Shown here piece by piece: positions 3,044-43,888 of a DNA stretch of 64,000 nt. Positions within the stretch are counted from its first letter, which is position 1. Each line of letters starts with the position of its first letter. The notes under the pieces are model-generated. The model did no database searches and was not told the origin of the DNA. It saw only the letters and a list, made by a program, of their open reading frames with translations. Made by a program: the position numbers and the translations under genes. This DNA is from Klebsormidium nitens (taxonomy: Eukaryota; Plantae; Klebsormidiophyceae). The stretch is from NCBI GenBank assembly GCA_000708835.1, contig DF237191.1, forward strand, positions 62,001 to 126,000, given 5' to 3'.

Positions 3044-6000
3044 TCACCTCTTTCTTGACAGCAAATTCGAAAGAGCGCTTTGAGCTTCGGCGGCGTCCTT
3101 GACAAGCACATTCTCTTCAAAAGATAGGCGTTGAACGTTGAACTGCAACAAAAGACAGCGTATATCAGACGAGCGCTGTTGAAAGGTGGTGGCGTCTCAT
3201 CCTACCGTAGAACACTGGGCTCCAAAAGACCGGGTAGACCGTGACGAACGATCAATGCAAGCCATGCACGCTGTCTCCAAGTAAGTGGAGTTGATTTTGG
3301 AGTTTGATTCGGCCGTGAGTGCCCTTTCGTCCTCGCTCCTTTACAAGTAGGGGATGCTTTGCCTTTGAGGAACGGGCAGACCCTCTTGAGGTACAGAAGT
3401 CTGCTCTAGCTGGTTCCGCGAGCGGCAAGGCAAAGCCCGCTTCAATGTGACAAAGGGTCCATTTGCAAGTTGGCTGGCAAAACTACAACCGCTGGCAGGT
3501 TAAATGCGCCGTCGACCGGGGGCCTCCCAAGCCAACGCAAAACAAATCACGCGACTTCCAGACCGACAAGTTTTTGGGTTTTGAGCAGAATTGAGGGCCG
3601 ACGTGGCAAAAGAACAAAGGCCGCTTCTCACGCTGGCGGTTATGAAACCCCTGGCCTTTCCACCCCACGGGAATCTTGAGCAAAGTACAGGAAAGGAGAA
3701 GCAACGAAGAGGCTGACTAGTACCAAGCAAACCGGAAGGAGCATCTCATCCACGATCCTTGCGGCACCGGCATGTCGACGCCCCTACACCCATGACACTG
3801 ACAAATTTTTACCCCCAGCCTTCTCGCCTGACGGCGGATCTTCAAGAGAAGCCAGCTCTTGAATGAAAATCAAAAAGGCATAATGAGTTAAAAACCTTTC
3901 GCCTTGCCGCCGCTGGTGCCATCACGTGCGCACATCTTACCCCCCACCTTTTCGAAGGATCGCCATATTTGAGCGAAGACAAGCAGGAACTTAGATGAAG
4001 ACTGGATACAATCGAATGGCGCATCTCACCCGCGCGCCTTGCCGCACCCGCACGTCGACGCCCCTGCTGTCGATGGAAATGAGCGCCGCGTCGTCCACTT
4101 CCTGGCCCAGCTCCTCCGCGAGGTGCCCGCACAGGGGGTCCGAAAACTCGTTGTTCAGCACCTGGCAAGAGCAAAGACAAACAGCATCAGCTTCAAAGCT
4201 GGAAACCAAGGCCATTACTTTGTTCCATTTGTAAAGCATCGTGCCAACACACCACCTAAGACAGGATAGGTCTGCGGCCGTGAACGCGGTAAAATTTTTG
4301 AAGGAGCGTCCGCGCATTCTGAAGACTCAAGTCTCTCTGAAGGTGACCTGGTTTCTCTGTTTTACAGGACCGGAGACACCGTTCTTAGCACAGCAATGTC
4401 CTTCGCCCAAAAGGACGTTGAAGACGCTCTTATACGAATAACCCATTTGTTCTGTGATAAGGACGGTCCAGGCTCAGGCGAAAAGTGATTGATAAAAGCC
4501 ATTTGCATGTCGACTCTGCTGATACTACAAAAATCTCGAGAGAGTTCCATGGGCGGACAGAAAGGGGTGGTGCAAAATCAGGAACGAAGAGCAACAGGAA
4601 CTGAAATATTGCCCCGTTATCCAGACGGCAGAAGTGCAACCAATCCAGCACGTTTTACCCCAGAAGCAGTGAGTGACGTAGCTTTGCTGACGCAACATAG
4701 GATCAGATCTTGTCTGCTAATACGTGATGCTAAGATGTGAACTTTGACCAAACTCCCGCCTGGCAGTGCTGTGAACTCCTCCGTTCTCATTCGCGACTTC
4801 CCTACGTACAAACCCCCATGCTTACCTGGAGCGTCTCGCTGACGTTCGAGGCAGCGATGATGTCCGGTTTCGCTGCGGAGTATTCCTTGACATCGACCCA
4901 AGCGACCGTCCCAAAGCCCCCTACGAAGTAGATATCGCTGCACGCGCAAAAAGGCAGCGCTTAGTATCAACAAACACTTGACGCTTTGAAGACTCGATAA
5001 AAACTTCCACAATCGGGTTAGGAACATCCGGTCATGTGCACACAGCCCGTCCGTTTGAGTGAAGGTCGGTGGCAGAAGCTGAATAAGGGTTCTAATCTTT
5101 GAAACAGTGAGCACCTCTCTGTTCGCAGAGCATTGACATAACAACAATGATAGGTACGCACCCGTCCGCTGATGCTGTTTACGAGGAAGGAAGTAAGCCA
5201 TGCATCACGACACAAGCAAAAACTTTTGGGAGCATTTTGAAAGGGTTGAAAAAAGGACAATTTGTCCAACTGTCCGCTTTCTATTCCTCCGAGCAGCCTG
5301 CGCTTTCCGACAGCAACTCACCTAATATTAGCCATCCGGTAGAAGTAAAAGTTGCCCCACTGGAACGACGCCCCGTGGTTGTGCTTGGCGCTATGCAGCT
5401 TCTGTGCCCATTCCTGAAACAAAAGAGCAAGAGTCAACACGAGCAAGGGTGGAGCTTGGTAAGGCTCGCAGGGCTCTATTGGCCCGCCTGCCTGACCATT
5501 CACCGAATCAGAAGACAGAGCCGTCATCTTCTTCACGCCTCGTCTGCAAGTTGAACCGCAGTCGGACGGAGCCCCATGTCCGAAGGTCGAGATCGGCCGG
5601 GGAAGGAATGCCCCTAGACCTCCACACTGCGACCTTGCCCGCACAGCACACTAAAATTCTTGCACTCCGTCAGCGACTGGTAAAACCAAAGGTCAGGTTC
5701 TCAACCGCTCATTTTAAACAATGCGCGAGAACACGACAAGCATGGCAGAAGACTTTGCATCGACCACCCTCTGCGGTCGCCCTTTCTCACCTGCTGTTCC
5801 TGTGGCAGTGGGTACACGTCACCAAAGATGGTCACGCGCGCGTTGGCGAGCCCGGACCAGCCTGGAATCTGAACGACGAGCGTGCACCGGGGGTCGGCCA
5901 AAATGTTTCGGGTGTGGATGGCGAGAGGGGAGAGGGAGAAGATCGGATCTGCACCAGATGAATGCGGCTAATCAACGTAAGTCGCGATTATGATGAGTGT

Positions 6001-38600: not shown

Positions 38601-39890
38601 GCTTTGTTGCATAGCGGCAAGCCACTCCGAAGGGGCACGGCTCATCAGATGCAAACGGACAGGGCCCCTCGAGATCAGCTGCCTTTTTCTCCAAGAACAG
38701 TGTAAGGTCATGACTGAAGCGGCACTGACTGCCGTATGTGCAGGCGTTTGAGTTCCCCGTTCGAGCGACCACTCCGCACACGTTGGTCTGCAAACAATTG
38801 GAGCGCTTTGTGCCGTCAGTAGTGCACTTTTAGAGGACGTCACATACAGAAAGTTGCCAGGTATCTTTTTGAGATGTCTTCGCGTGAGTTCGCAAACAGC
38901 GCCCAGCCCTTGCAGCTGGACGCGAGCATCTTGGAGGAGGAGCATAACTTGCAATTGGTGGTACAATCCTCAATGATTCTCTAAGTAATGTGATGCACCA
39001 AAGAGACTCTTGATGGAATATTTGGCAGAACATCTGCTCACACCAAGGTCCCAGAATAGTGACAGTACTGGTGTCGCCAGCAAAGAAATGATGCTCAAAG
39101 TCTCCAAGGTCCTTGGCCAAGCAACCCCATATGCGATTTGGCAGTCCGGTTATTAAATGAAGAATCTACTTTGTTTGTCTCGATAAGGTAACAAAAAGCA
39201 AGCATGGGAATGAGGGGCACTGCAGGCCAAAGATATCTATGAGCCTGGACAATTATCAACAATGAACCTCGTCTACCAACACTGGCCGATGTTGCACTTC
39301 CTTGTCAAAAATTGCCGAAGCCAGAGGGCATCACACAGGATGTGCATCATTTCCAGCAGACAAAAATCGCTTGCTTGAACAAGTCCTATTTCAGTCTATA
39401 CACCACCCGTTGGACAACAAAGACAATCTCACATAGACAGCGATCTCCCAGGGTCGGGGTTTACCTTCTTGGCCTCAGCCCTCGCTTTTTTCATCGCCCG
39501 CTTGCTCAGCTTAGATCCAGATACCTTCGCACCGTCCGCGGCTCCTTCAGCTGACTGCCCGGTGTTTGCTGCTCTCTCCTTCTTCCAGGCATCTCTCTCT
39601 TCTGGCGTCCACAGAAACTCCTCTCTTACAGGGGCAATGCCACGAGCCAGCTTTTCTTCAAGGGAGAGGGGTGGACGAACAGGCTTGACCCCATCAATAC
39701 CAACCCCATTCACACCACCGTTCTGCTCCTTGACAGCAACTTCCTCTGTCGCAGACGGCTGGATTGCAGTGACATTCTGCATCAGCGATTCTGGGAGCAA
39801 GCTCTGATGACTGGTGGTCGCAACCGTCACCACTTCAGTCACTTCGGCCTCACCAATCCTGCCACCTGCCGCCTGCGCAGGCTCTTCCAT
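32681..39890 (-). CDS. DUS3: tRNA-dihydrouridine(47) synthase DUS3/DUS3L with N-terminal CCCH zinc fingers
   Basis: Multi-exon. Motifs [11 protein letters not shown]...CPF...[66 protein letters not shown] (catalytic Cys), [37 protein letters not shown]-like [10 protein letters not shown] and C-terminal FTPKHKS. Confidence 0.93.
34823..34889 (-). repeat. Degenerate duplicate of a DUS3 exon 3' end and donor site, located in the following intron
   Basis: Source 34976-35046 ([22 protein letters not shown]|GT). The copy lies 153 nt downstream and reads [17 protein letters not shown]|GTAATC in the same open frame. Confidence 0.7.
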
Positions 39891-40617
39891 TTCCTGAGGC
39901 AGAACACCACCTCCAATGCAATAGATGACCGATGGTGGTGCTATAAACTACTATGATAGTATCCAATGTGCCAGACAACTTGTTTCTCTGTTTCGTCGCC
40001 CTTCCTCACCCTTCCTTCTGCCCCAAGCATGCCTCCTTCCACTTGCTCAATTGCCATACCGTTAGTATTTGGAGACCAGCCATCGTGGCAGCAGACTGTC
40101 TTGTAATAGGATTCAGGAACTGTGCAGGCGGGGTACTTCGAAGTTCTAGAATCTAGACTACCTGTGTAAAGAGACTTGGAACCATTACCGGCTTCAGCAA
40201 ACGGTGCACGGCTGTCTTGCCGGCGTTGTTGTCTGATACACACGTCTGGGCTAAGAACGCGAGCACCGGGTACCCCACGTTAGCGGCAACGGGACGGTTG
40301 ATCAAGATGCAATATCATGTTGAGGAAACTTGAGGCCCAGGCGGGGGCCCCGGGGGGGGGCGCACGCGAGTCGTTTCTCACCTCCGACTCTCCGAGTTCG
40401 CCGAGCGCCGATTCTATCCGCGCGCGCGCGCGCGTCCCGAGTCATCTCATGTGCTGATTAGACGGAGTAGACCAGAGTAGACCAGCTGCTCATGATCCCT
40501 CTTCAGCTAGCTCAAGCCTCAGACAAATTGAAGCCACAAAGAAGAGCGCTTAGCATTAGTGTAGGTGAGTACGTGCATGACGGCTTTGCTCCCTCGAGCT
40601 GGCAGGTTTGCTGCAGG
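39891..40617. promoter_or_regulatory. Short head-to-head (putative bidirectional) promoter region between DUS3 and the SDR
   Basis: Divergent ATGs at 39890 (-) and 40618 (+). Central GC-rich core with GGGGCCCCGG, a 9-G run and (CG)8. Confidence 0.55.
40419..40434. repeat. (CG)8 perfect alternating run
   Basis: Directly visible as cgcgcgcgcgcgcgcg. Confidence 0.9.
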
Positions 40618-43354
40618 ATGGCTGGACCGAACAAATGCCGCCGATACGAGGGGAGAGTGTGCATAATTACAGCATCAACAGCAGGGATCGGGCTCGGAAT
40701 TGCGAGGCGGCTTGCACAGGAAGGAGCTTCCGTCGTTATATCGTCCAGGAAAGAAAAAAACGTGAATGATGCAGTTGCTCAGCTCAAAAAGGAGGGGCTG
40801 GAGGCCTTTGGAGTGGTGTGTCATGTTGGGAGCGCTGAGCACAGGAAGAAGCTGATTGATGAAACAATCCAAGTGAGCCTTCTGTAGATATAGGAGGCTC
40901 CAGCAAAGCCTTCTATGCTGTGTTCATCTTTCAGTCTTACAAGTATTCTACTTTTGTTGCCAGCTTACTGGCCCGAATCACCAGGAACTGATTTGCAAGC
41001 CTTCCTGCAACTTCTGGCGTAAACTGTAGTAACAGATTGCAATCTACCGAGGCTTGAAAGGTTTGACTGTGCCATGCATTGCATGTGACATTTTTGGACA
41101 TTCGAGTTGTGATCAGTCAAATCTTGAGATAGTGGTAGGACTTTTGAAAGCTCCAGCATTGTCTGCATCTGGCACAGGCACACTCCCTAGAGACAGTCAC
41201 CCAACCACTTGGTGGTAGTTTTTTTTTTTTCCTGATACAGCGTTTGGAAACAGATTGCCAAAGCTGCGTAAAGTTCTGTCTTTCTGCTCAGAGTAAGGTC
41301 AGAATCATGGATGATATCAGCATCCCCCTCATTTCTTAGTCCATGGAGACTTTGCGTCTGTGCATCCTGCTTTGCGATGAAGGCACTGAAAAGGCAGATT
41401 TTACTCCCTGCAGTTATTGTGCCTTTCATGATTGCTTGGGCAATCAAATGTTTTAATAGTTTGGCTTGGACATACCTCATGAAAGCGTGAAACATAACTC
41501 ACAGCGGTTACTTTCTGGAATGCAGAAGTATGGCAAGATCGACGTGTTTGTTTCCAATGCTGCTGTCAACCCCGGCGTCGGTCCCATACTGGACATGGCA
41601 GAGTCGCAGCTGGACAAGATTCTGGAGATCAACGTCAAAGTTTCGGTCCTCCTAGTCCGGGTAAGTTAGAAGATTTCATAACGGCTTTGGCTCTTGGCAG
41701 ATGCTTTTAGAATGACAGACAACCAGAGAAGGAGTGCAATTGACGGAACCAGTTGCAATTGCACTGACAGAGAGAGTGGAAGAAGTTGAGCCTACCGTCA
41801 GTATCCGGTCAAGATAGAATATTGTCATTTGCTGCTATCTGGGGGTGGCGGTCTACCATACGTGCCGTAGTGTCAGCCTGATATCAAAGGCACTTTTTGT
41901 TATTGTCTCAGCAGTGCTCCCAATCTCAATGCACATGTCTACACAAGAGCCCTGTAATACCGGGAACCATGTGCTTCAGTATCTTGGACAAGGACTCTAC
42001 TGGTTTCGTTCCAACCATCCAACCTAGGAATTTCATCACACCAAAAGGTTCAGAAAACAAAATCCACCCAAGCAGCTCCCAAGCAGCTGCAAACATCTGC
42101 AGGAAGCAATCCAGCACATCCCGTCTGGCGGAAGTGTTATCTTCACCTTCTCATTGGCCGCATTCAACCCCTCAGCCCCACTCGCCTTCTATGGCGTCAG
42201 CAAGACTGCTCTTCTCGGGGTCACCCGGGTAAGTCACACCTCAGACTGAGCACCCGTTTCTTGAGTGTTGCAGGAGGCCGCCCCACACATCCCATCAGGC
42301 GGTAGCATCATTCTCATCTCGTCAATCACAGCCTTCAACCCGGGGGCGCCTCTAGCTATGTACGCAGTCAGCAAGACGGCTCTGCTAGGGCTGACGAGAG
42401 TGAGCGTTTCTATCGAAAGGAACTTTTCCGGAATGTTTTGAAAGACCCCCTTGGTTTCTTTGCAAGGGGCCAAGCTTCATTGCTAGAAGGAAGTCATTAG
42501 ACGAGATGTACCCTCCGTCCTTGCTCTTGATCGTAGTGTGAAAGTTGGGCTCCATTCCTGCTCCCAGTCTTAGTTGAATTTGTTTTGAAGCTATCCTTTG
42601 TGGTCTGATTGGAGTAGGGAAGTTGGACAACATGAAGTCGTCATGGTCGACCTTTCCTAAAGTTCATGCCTTAACATGTATCTCTTGTAGCATCTCGCTG
42701 CCTTCGTCGTACTTTCAACCTCGAGCACCCTTTCTTTTGCAGGGCCTGGCGGCTGAGCTAGCTCCCAACGTCAGAGTCAACTGCGTCGCCCCGGGTATTG
42801 TGCCCACGCACTTCGCAAGCGCTCTGGTAGCCAACGAGGCCTCGGTGAGTGGCCGTTCGAACCTTGGCTTCGACTGGAATGACTCAATGCGTGGGGTTAG
42901 ATAGTGACTACTACCGTGGTGCCTTGGCAGAGAAAATCATGCCACGAAGGGGAGTTTTGTGTTAAGAAGACGCATTAAACAATGTATACATAAGATGAAA
43001 TCGTATCCTGTTGCTCAACCGGACCGAGTTTCGTGTCCCTCCTTCATTGCTTTCTGAAAGTCGCTTGAGGCTCCCACTTAAGGCAGGGGTTTTTGCAGGA
43101 ATCTCAGAGATCATCTGGTGCGACTGCTTGGATGGTGAGCAGAGGGTTACACCATTTCTATTGCAATGCATGAGGCCCTGATTAACTGCTCTACGTATAT
43201 GCAGAAGAAAGCCATGGAAGACCAGACCCTGCTTAAAAGACTTGGGACGCCCGAAGACATTGCAGGGGCGGTGGCCTTTCTAGCCTCCGATGATGCCGCA
43301 TACGTAACAGGAGAGACCGTGGTTGTGGCTGGAGGGACGCAGTCAAGGCTCTGA
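40618..43354 (+). CDS. IBR1: Peroxisomal short-chain dehydrogenase/reductase (IBR1/SDRA, DHRS4-like), 255 aa per isoform
   Basis: Exons 40618-40872, 41526-41660, [42103-42228 or 42274-42399], 42743-42844, 43205-43354. Motifs ITASTAGIG, SSRK, VSNAAVNP, YxxSK, VRVNCVAPG, LKRLGTPEDIAGAVAFLAS and C-terminal PTS1 SRL*. Confidence 0.92.
42103..42228 (+). other. Alternative SDR exon 3A (putative mutually exclusive exon)
   Basis: ctgcAG acceptor, 126 nt encoding EAIQHIPSGGSVIFTFSLAAFNPSAPLAFYGVSKTALLGVTR, GTAAGT donor, phase 0/0. Confidence 0.8.
42274..42399 (+). other. Alternative SDR exon 3B (putative mutually exclusive exon)
   Basis: ttgcAG acceptor, 126 nt encoding EAAPHIPSGGSIILISSITAFNPGAPLAMYAVSKTALLGLTR, GTGAGC donor, phase 0/0. 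Confidence 0.88.
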
Positions 43355-43888
43355 GAGACGTCGGAAGCAACGAGTAACGTTTGAAGGTACCGCTTCCTAA
43401 CGAAGTCCGAGAGTCCGAGTTCCATGTATATAACGGGTATATTACGTTGATATGAATCTGGCACGCTCACACTGTAAGGATTTGTCGCATGCAGAGTCTG
43501 CTGGTACAAAGACATCTAAGGATAATCATTGAGGATTAAAAGAAGGGCTTGCGCGCGGAATCGGACAGAATGATCCTGACAGGTCTTTTGCATCACGCTT
43601 TGCATCACCGCTGAGCGCCACCACAAAAAGCCTACACCTTATGTTCATGTAAGATTGCTCAAACCGAAGCCTGAATGGTTGAGCTCAGAAGGAGCTTGAT
43701 TCAAAATGGAGTGTCAAAGACTCTACTGAATACACGAATATCCTACAAAAATCAGATACCATCAGATTCTTGGCGGCCGCATCGTCTGACAGTCATGGAG
43801 TCGAGGAGGGGTCGAGAACTACATGGTAGGCTCTAGGTACGTCCTTGCACGCATGTTTTGACACCTTTAATTATAGTTTTAAGTGCCA

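Follow-up and report, generated by a model that had tools for sequence, protein, structure and literature searches.

Steric exclusion between mutually exclusive exons (MXEs) is classical in animals. In systems of the alpha-tropomyosin exon 2/3 type, two alternative exons lie side by side, exactly one of them enters each mRNA, and the upstream exon has its donor too near the branch site that serves the downstream exon. By the accepted criterion, such steric interference is recognized from a donor-to-branch distance of less than about 50 nt, and the steric type so defined accounts for about 9% of human MXE clusters (PMC5740500). We describe here a pair of exons, 3A and 3B, in a short-chain dehydrogenase/reductase (SDR) gene of the DHRS4/IBR1 type from Klebsormidium nitens. 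The gene lies on the forward strand of a stretch of 64,000 nucleotides (assembly GCA_000708835.1, contig DF237191.1, positions 62,001 to 126,000), called the window below, and positions are those of the window. The algal pair shares with the tropomyosin type the adjacency of its alternative exons, the use of exactly one exon per mRNA, and a downstream branch site, putative in the SDR gene and placed there by conservation, that would be too close to the upstream donor. It differs in that the whole spacer is only 42–46 nt, the exons are clear homologues, and the host is a streptophyte alga. We think it quite probable that this is a conserved MXE pair, sterically enforced, that yields two isozymes.

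Descriptions of alternative splicing in the green lineage usually speak of retained introns that change the proteome little. The initial annotation of this DNA called homologous MXEs rarely reported in that lineage; the rarity is real but not absolute, as exons 4 and 5 of Volvox carteri cyn23 are verified homologous, mutually exclusive exons (PMC4378016). Like the SDR exons, those of cyn23 are homologous, equal in length and used alternatively, and in both genes the isoforms have identical lengths, with about a dozen residues different between them. In cyn23 the exon length of 106 nt is not divisible by 3, so that the reading frame can enforce exclusivity; the SDR exons, by contrast, are 126 nt long and in frame, which calls for a mechanism at the level of splicing. 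For the SDR pair, in contrast to cyn23, selection and conservation between species are shown. The host gene offers a second comparison, as follows. Animals diversified DHRS4 by duplicating the whole gene, which gave the DHRS4/DHRS4L1/DHRS4L2 cluster (PMC2892492), whereas the algal SDR gene was diversified by exon duplication and splicing.

Exons 3A and 3B and their use in spliced RNA

Exon 3A (42103–42228, + strand) is preceded by an AG at 42101–42102 and followed by GTAAGT from 42229. Exon 3B (42274–42399, + strand) is preceded by an AG at 42272–42273 and followed by GTGAGC from 42400. Both are alternative exons of 126 nt, or 42 codons, in phase 0 and without a stop in frame 1; this much of the initial annotation can be read directly in the sequence. 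The peptides quoted there are also those of the two exons, and both retain the catalytic Ser and the YxxxK motif. The catalytic Ser, Tyr and Lys fall at codons 17, 30 and 34 of either exon, that is, at 42151–42153, 42190–42192 and 42202–42204 in 3A and at 42322–42324, 42361–42363 and 42373–42375 in 3B. Each exon matches positions 127–161 of the Pfam adh_short profile.

The two exons are identical at 30 of 42 residues (71%) and at 83 of 126 nucleotides (66%). By codon position, 33 of the 42 first positions, 36 of the second and 14 of the third are identical. Within the window, the proportion of nonsynonymous differences (pN) is 0.18 and that of synonymous differences (pS) is 0.78, a saturated value (Fisher p = 1e-9). 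The resemblance is far above chance. Because the third codon positions are saturated while pN is so low, the duplication must be taken as old, and both copies as long held as protein-coding sequence. Adjacency, the same length and phase, intact splice sites and homology, which define a homologous-exon cluster, are all present. Exon 3B scores better than 3A in comparisons with Pfam, with DHRS4 and with the outgroup homologues, and since 3B is the nearer to the outgroups and to DHRS4, it is the ancestral-like default copy, with 3A the derived, faster-evolving one. A word search with exon 3A alone returned no candidates and is uninformative, since a 42-residue query reaches only proteins of 23–73 residues.

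The exon structure was derived from the + strand sequence together with spliced RNA contigs, and every search was made exon by exon. For RNA, Logan contigs of four public runs from four studies (X15, X11, X9 and X1) were placed on 40400–43500. All four runs are RNA, as their contigs skip every GT..AG intron. The four joints foreseen for either-or use were all found in the spliced contigs: 41660>42103 and 42228>42743 for 3A, and 41660>42274 and 42399>42743 for 3B. Contigs lose rare variants, and depth ratios taken from them are rough. With that reservation, the joints of 3B to exons 2 and 4 have depths of 51 in X15, 80 in X11, 280 in X9 and 154–177 in X1, and those of 3A have depths of 23 in X15 and 93–131 in X1, with none in X11 and X9. 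The 3A share of the bubble depth is about 30–40% in X15 and X1, which come from two studies.

In X15, the two alternatives form a pair of unbranched 184-nt contigs, the signature of an either-or bubble. One path runs through 27 nt of exon 2, 3A and 31 nt of exon 4, and the other through 27 nt of exon 2, 3B and 30 nt of exon 4. Had a 3A>3B junction stood above the assembler threshold, these contigs would have broken at the end of 3A. X11 and X9 each present a single unbroken contig in the order exon 1-2-3B-4, with zero depth over 3A, though intron fragments are present at depth 2–5. The 3A>3B joint (42228>42274), whose absence had been predicted, occurs in none of the contigs of the four runs, so that no splicing of both exons together is observed, and neither does a skip from exon 2 to exon 4. 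The spacer (42229–42273) has zero depth in the four runs and is never seen spliced out alone. At the detection level of contigs, every mRNA contains one of the two exons, and none contains both or lacks both. Exon 3B is the default, and the use of 3A varies between studies from undetected to about 40%.

Conservation of the pair, its spacer and a probable steric mechanism

A word search with exon 1 led to exon-sized open reading frame fragments in two related taxa, L003 and L004, each represented by genomic Logan contigs. In L003, exon 1 is 94% identical to that of the window, the synonymous divergence (dS) is about 0.25–0.5 on most exons, and collinearity with the window extends over the entire gene. 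The corresponding values for L004 are 85% and a dS of about 1.2–2.4. The exon 2 protein is 93–96% identical in the two taxa. Both have kept the two copies of exon 3 with all splice sites intact (AG, GTRAGY), so that the conservation in related species by which the pair was to be judged is found. The exons lie at 1608–1733 (3A) and 1780–1905 (3B) in L003, with a spacer of 46 nt, and at 1485–1610 (3A) and 1653–1778 (3B) in L004, with a spacer of 42 nt.

Although the exon 3B sequences of the relatives have 9 and 23 synonymous changes, they have 0 nonsynonymous ones, and the protein is 100% identical in the three taxa. For orthologous 3A exons, the ratio of nonsynonymous to synonymous rates (omega) is 0.07–0.09, against 0.06–0.07 for the constitutive exon 1. 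When 3A is compared with 3B within each taxon, pS is 0.73–0.80 and pN is 0.15–0.18. In the three taxa, purifying selection maintains both copies and the short spacer.

A search with the 3A/3B alignment returned only two near-identical moss-like metagenome loci, L001 and L002. This land-plant-like homologue has a single exon 3, and its exon 2/3/4 boundaries are those of the algal gene, so that these intron positions predate the split from land plants. Both loci (L001 at 3731–4800) are AT-rich and have an exon 3 of 129 nt; an additional intron interrupts their exon 1 region. Another algal homologue, L006, has a single exon 3 segment, fused to exon 4. On the best explanation, a single ancient exon was duplicated in tandem long ago in the Klebsormidium lineage, and the pair goes back to that event.

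The spacer intron (42229–42273, + strand) reads GTAAGT...ACTGAGCA...TGCAG. Its lengths in the window, L003 and L004 are 45, 46 and 42 nt, respectively. The other introns of the gene are 287–659 nt long, and their lengths differ between taxa by up to about 170 nt. ACTGAGCA (42245–42252, + strand) is the sole internal element of the spacer that is invariant in the three taxa. Its A is at spacer nt 21, 21 and 18 in the window, L003 and L004, respectively, and precedes the AG of 3B by 24, 25 and 24 nt. A position 24–25 nt upstream of an acceptor is the normal distance for a branch site. ACTGAGCA is likely the branch site of the 3B acceptor, with a putative branch A at 42249. The initial annotation, which had pointed to a 45-nt spacer with a CTGAG near the donor, is confirmed, with the CTGAG at 42246–42250, or spacer nt 18–22. 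A sequence similar to the 3' half of the spacer (42249–42263, GAGCACCCGTTTCTT) also closes the intron that precedes exon 4 (about 42724–42737, GAGCACCCTTTCTT), and in L003 GTGAGCACC is likewise found at the 3' end of that intron. The likeness may reflect a shared branch-site and polypyrimidine pattern or be a trace of the duplication's origin.

Steric exclusion is the most likely mechanism, and we hold it to be reasonably, if not overwhelmingly, probable. It is favored because the spacer of 42–46 nt and the invariant ACTGAGCA are conserved while the other introns drift. As the whole spacer is only 42–46 nt, any branch point within it falls below the criterion of about 50 nt; ACTGAGCA is 18–21 nt from the donor. 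The steric proposal of the initial annotation gains support from the conserved spacer length and the invariant, branch-like ACTGAGCA. It would operate as follows. With the putative 3B branch site no more than about 20 nt beyond the donor of 3A, U1 on that donor and U2 on the branch site could not sit together, so that the 45-nt spacer could not be removed as an intron. Where 3A is defined as an exon, its donor would pair with the acceptor of exon 4, and 3B would be lost; where the 3B branch site is taken first, 3A would be lost.

The choice between the exons would probably be made at the weak 3A acceptor. That acceptor is pyrimidine-poor, with a fraction of 0.45 that is the lowest of the gene's five acceptors, and no CTRAN motif is present in the last 60 nt. 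Its weakness agrees with a regulated, non-default exon. Just upstream of it, at about 42066–42090, CCAAGCAGCT occurs twice in tandem in the window; the tandem is also present in L003, not in L004, and may represent either a splicing element peculiar to the lineage or a duplication of small extent.

Two other ways of enforcing exclusivity are ruled out. Enforcement by the reading frame and nonsense-mediated decay (NMD) fails since 126 is 3 × 42; a message with both exons, or with neither, would keep its frame and not be caught by NMD. Incompatibility between U2- and U12-type sites fails since all the donors are U2-type GTRAG. Throughout the gene, the donors read GTRAGY and the acceptors CAG, and there is no ATATCC or GTATCC donor.

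The gene and its two predicted isozymes

The SDR gene has five coding segments on the + strand, with phase 0 at every exon boundary. Exon 1 (40618–40872; 85 codons, from ATG to CAA) encodes the Rossmann start, with TASTAGIG as the TGxxxGxG motif, and SSRK. It matches positions 2–71 of the Pfam adh_short profile (E 3.5e-12), and its joint with exon 2, 40872>41526, is present in all four RNA runs. Exon 2 (41526–41660; 45 codons), which is constitutive, carries NAA and the Asn of the catalytic tetrad, in EINVK. The intron before 3A (41661–42102, 442 nt) is the one removed in the joint 41660>42103. Exon 4 (42743–42844; 34 codons) provides the constitutive acceptor for 3A and 3B alike and matches positions 157–185 of the adh_short_C2 profile. 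Exon 5 (43205–43354; 49 codons plus TGA) ends in SRL, encoded at 43343–43351. With either exon 3, the codons sum to 85 + 45 + 42 + 34 + 49 = 255, in agreement with the 255-residue product given in the initial annotation.

Pfam matches (PF00106/PF13561, adh_short and adh_short_C2) are found on all the exons and in collinear profile order. The best solved-structure match for 3A, and also for 3B, is DHRS4 (human 3o4r, pig 2zat). Beyond close relatives, the best database neighbors of exon 1 are land-plant entries named tropinone reductase-like 3, SDR or DHRS4. The algal gene has in common with DHRS4 (3o4r, 2zat) and the plant IBR1-type SDRs the TGxxxGxG and SSRK motifs, the N-S-Y-K tetrad and the C-terminal SRL, an ending that is retained in L003 and L006. 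A C-terminal SRL is a type-1 peroxisomal targeting signal (PTS1). Thus, the gene has what marks a classical SDR, namely TGxxxGxG, the catalytic Asn-Ser-Tyr-Lys and an adh_short domain, with DHRS4 and IBR1 as its closest relatives and a PTS1. The Pfam and structure matches, the motifs and neighbors of exon 1 and the SRL end fit a peroxisomal, DHRS4/IBR1-like classical SDR as the predicted product.

A few further features of the gene and its flank may be recorded. In X11, the main spliced contig (750 nt, depth 80) adds an A to the coding A7 run of exon 1 at 40753, which would shift the frame, and the other three runs match the window; the added A may stem from a mutation in the strain, from transcript slippage or from an error in the homopolymer. 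In intron 1, the T-run at 41218–41231 has an added TTTT in a low-depth X1 contig, an ordinary homopolymer variation or error. The 5' flank (40345–40485) contains a G9 run, a (GC)n stretch and the 9-nt tandem GTAGACCAG ×2, and lies between the SDR gene and an open-looking region of the opposite strand at about 39440–39900.

The two predicted isozymes of 255 residues would have the cofactor site, the C-terminal lid and the SRL signal in common; helix F and the surroundings of the catalytic Ser and Tyr would set them apart. Seven differences between 3A and 3B are fixed, being the same in the three taxa: F/L14, L/I18, A/T19, S or T/G24, F/M29, G/A31 and V/L40. Positions 14, 18, 19, 24 and 29 flank the catalytic Ser17 and Tyr30, and positions 31 and 40 are in helix F. 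Because the fixed differences occupy these places, the isoforms probably differ in the substrate pocket and/or the subunit interface. Specificity in DHRS4 may depend on positions 158 and 161 (pig numbering), of which 158 would align with exon position 24; this alignment is not used as evidence here.

Competing explanations and the meaning of the pair

The pair may be truly exclusive and yet owe this to competing RNA structures or trans-acting regulators, the short spacer being incidental. RNAalifold does find a 7-bp pairing between CCCGGGU in the 3A donor region (42223–42230) and ACCCGGG in 3B (42334–42340), invariant in the three taxa, and the CCAAGCAGCT tandem stands before the 3A acceptor in two taxa. 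However, the consensus fold lacks covariation support (covariation term +1.13), although three sequences give little power, and both sides of the pairing are constrained coding or splice-site sequence, so that covariation cannot test it; the CCAAGCAGCT motif, for its part, is absent from L004. What such structures or regulators leave unexplained is that the spacer keeps its 42–46 nt, and a branch-like motif at the distance canonical for its acceptor, where every other intron drifts in length; we regard this explanation as unlikely.

Two other explanations bear on 3A itself rather than on how the choice is enforced. That 3A is a decaying or noise pseudoexon, a leftover duplicate occasionally spliced in and without function, would accord with its absence from the contigs of X11 and X9, with its lower scores against Pfam and DHRS4 and its faster evolution, and with the unusual Phe before the catalytic Ser in the window. 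Against this, 3A has retained its frame, its splice sites and its Ser, Tyr and Lys in three taxa despite saturated synonymous sites, and its omega of 0.07–0.09 is the same as that of the constitutive exon 1. Moreover, it makes up about 30–40% of the bubble depth in two independent studies, which disposes of the never-included pseudoexon named by the initial annotation as a refuting outcome and leaves a functionless 3A very improbable. Or the 3A isoform, rather than having a second specificity, might have a regulatory role or little activity and, assembled together with 3B subunits, tune the tetramer. In classical SDRs, helix F is part of the main dimer interface. Exon 3 encodes strand 5 and helix F, the fixed differences include the helix-F positions 31 and 40, the inclusion of 3A differs between studies, and the K. 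nitens 3A has its Phe beside the catalytic Ser. Yet all the catalytic residues of 3A are retained in three taxa, and most of the fixed differences (14, 18, 19, 24 and 29) are near the catalytic Ser and Tyr, not at the interface. A subunit of this sort is rather unlikely.

Several points do weigh against a sterically enforced pair of isozymes. The branch point, placed at A42249 by conservation, could instead lie upstream of 3A, and some eukaryotes splice introns of 40–50 nt. Retention of the spacer would bring an in-frame TGA at 42247–42249 into the message, and this TGA lies within ACTGAGCA, a second possible reason for its conservation. All the RNA evidence comes from Logan contigs, from which low-level double inclusion or skipping could escape. 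On the protein side, the two substrate specificities would follow from the location of the fixed differences; the window 3A has Phe before the catalytic Ser where L003 and L004 have Ser, and some loss of activity in the window's 3A isoform is possible.

A search of the literature found no paper on MXEs in Klebsormidium. The SDR pair is not a new kind of splicing; it is an unusually well-supported new example of a known mode that is seldom documented outside animals. Here, a streptophyte alga makes two full-length versions of an enzyme by a strict either-or choice, and both are kept by selection across species. With exons that are in frame and sites that are of the U2 type, the locus isolates an exclusion mechanism at the level of splicing, and through its conserved spacer of 42–46 nt the steric model can be put to a direct test outside animals. 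It also supplies a natural pair of active-site variants for studying substrate choice in the peroxisomal reductases of the DHRS4/IBR1 type. A model in the public annotation can carry just one isoform, and the second is likely to go unnoticed.

It is tempting to propose, tentatively and as something rather less likely than not to hold in full, that growth conditions regulate a switch between the 3A and 3B isozymes and so retune which substrates the peroxisomal reductase accepts, that this is one case of a genome-wide habit in Klebsormidium of diversifying proteins by tandem exon duplication with strict either-or splicing, and that the switch is sterically enforced as in animals. If such a condition-regulated, sterically enforced switch proved true, the steric rule would be either ancestral to plants and animals or convergent across them.

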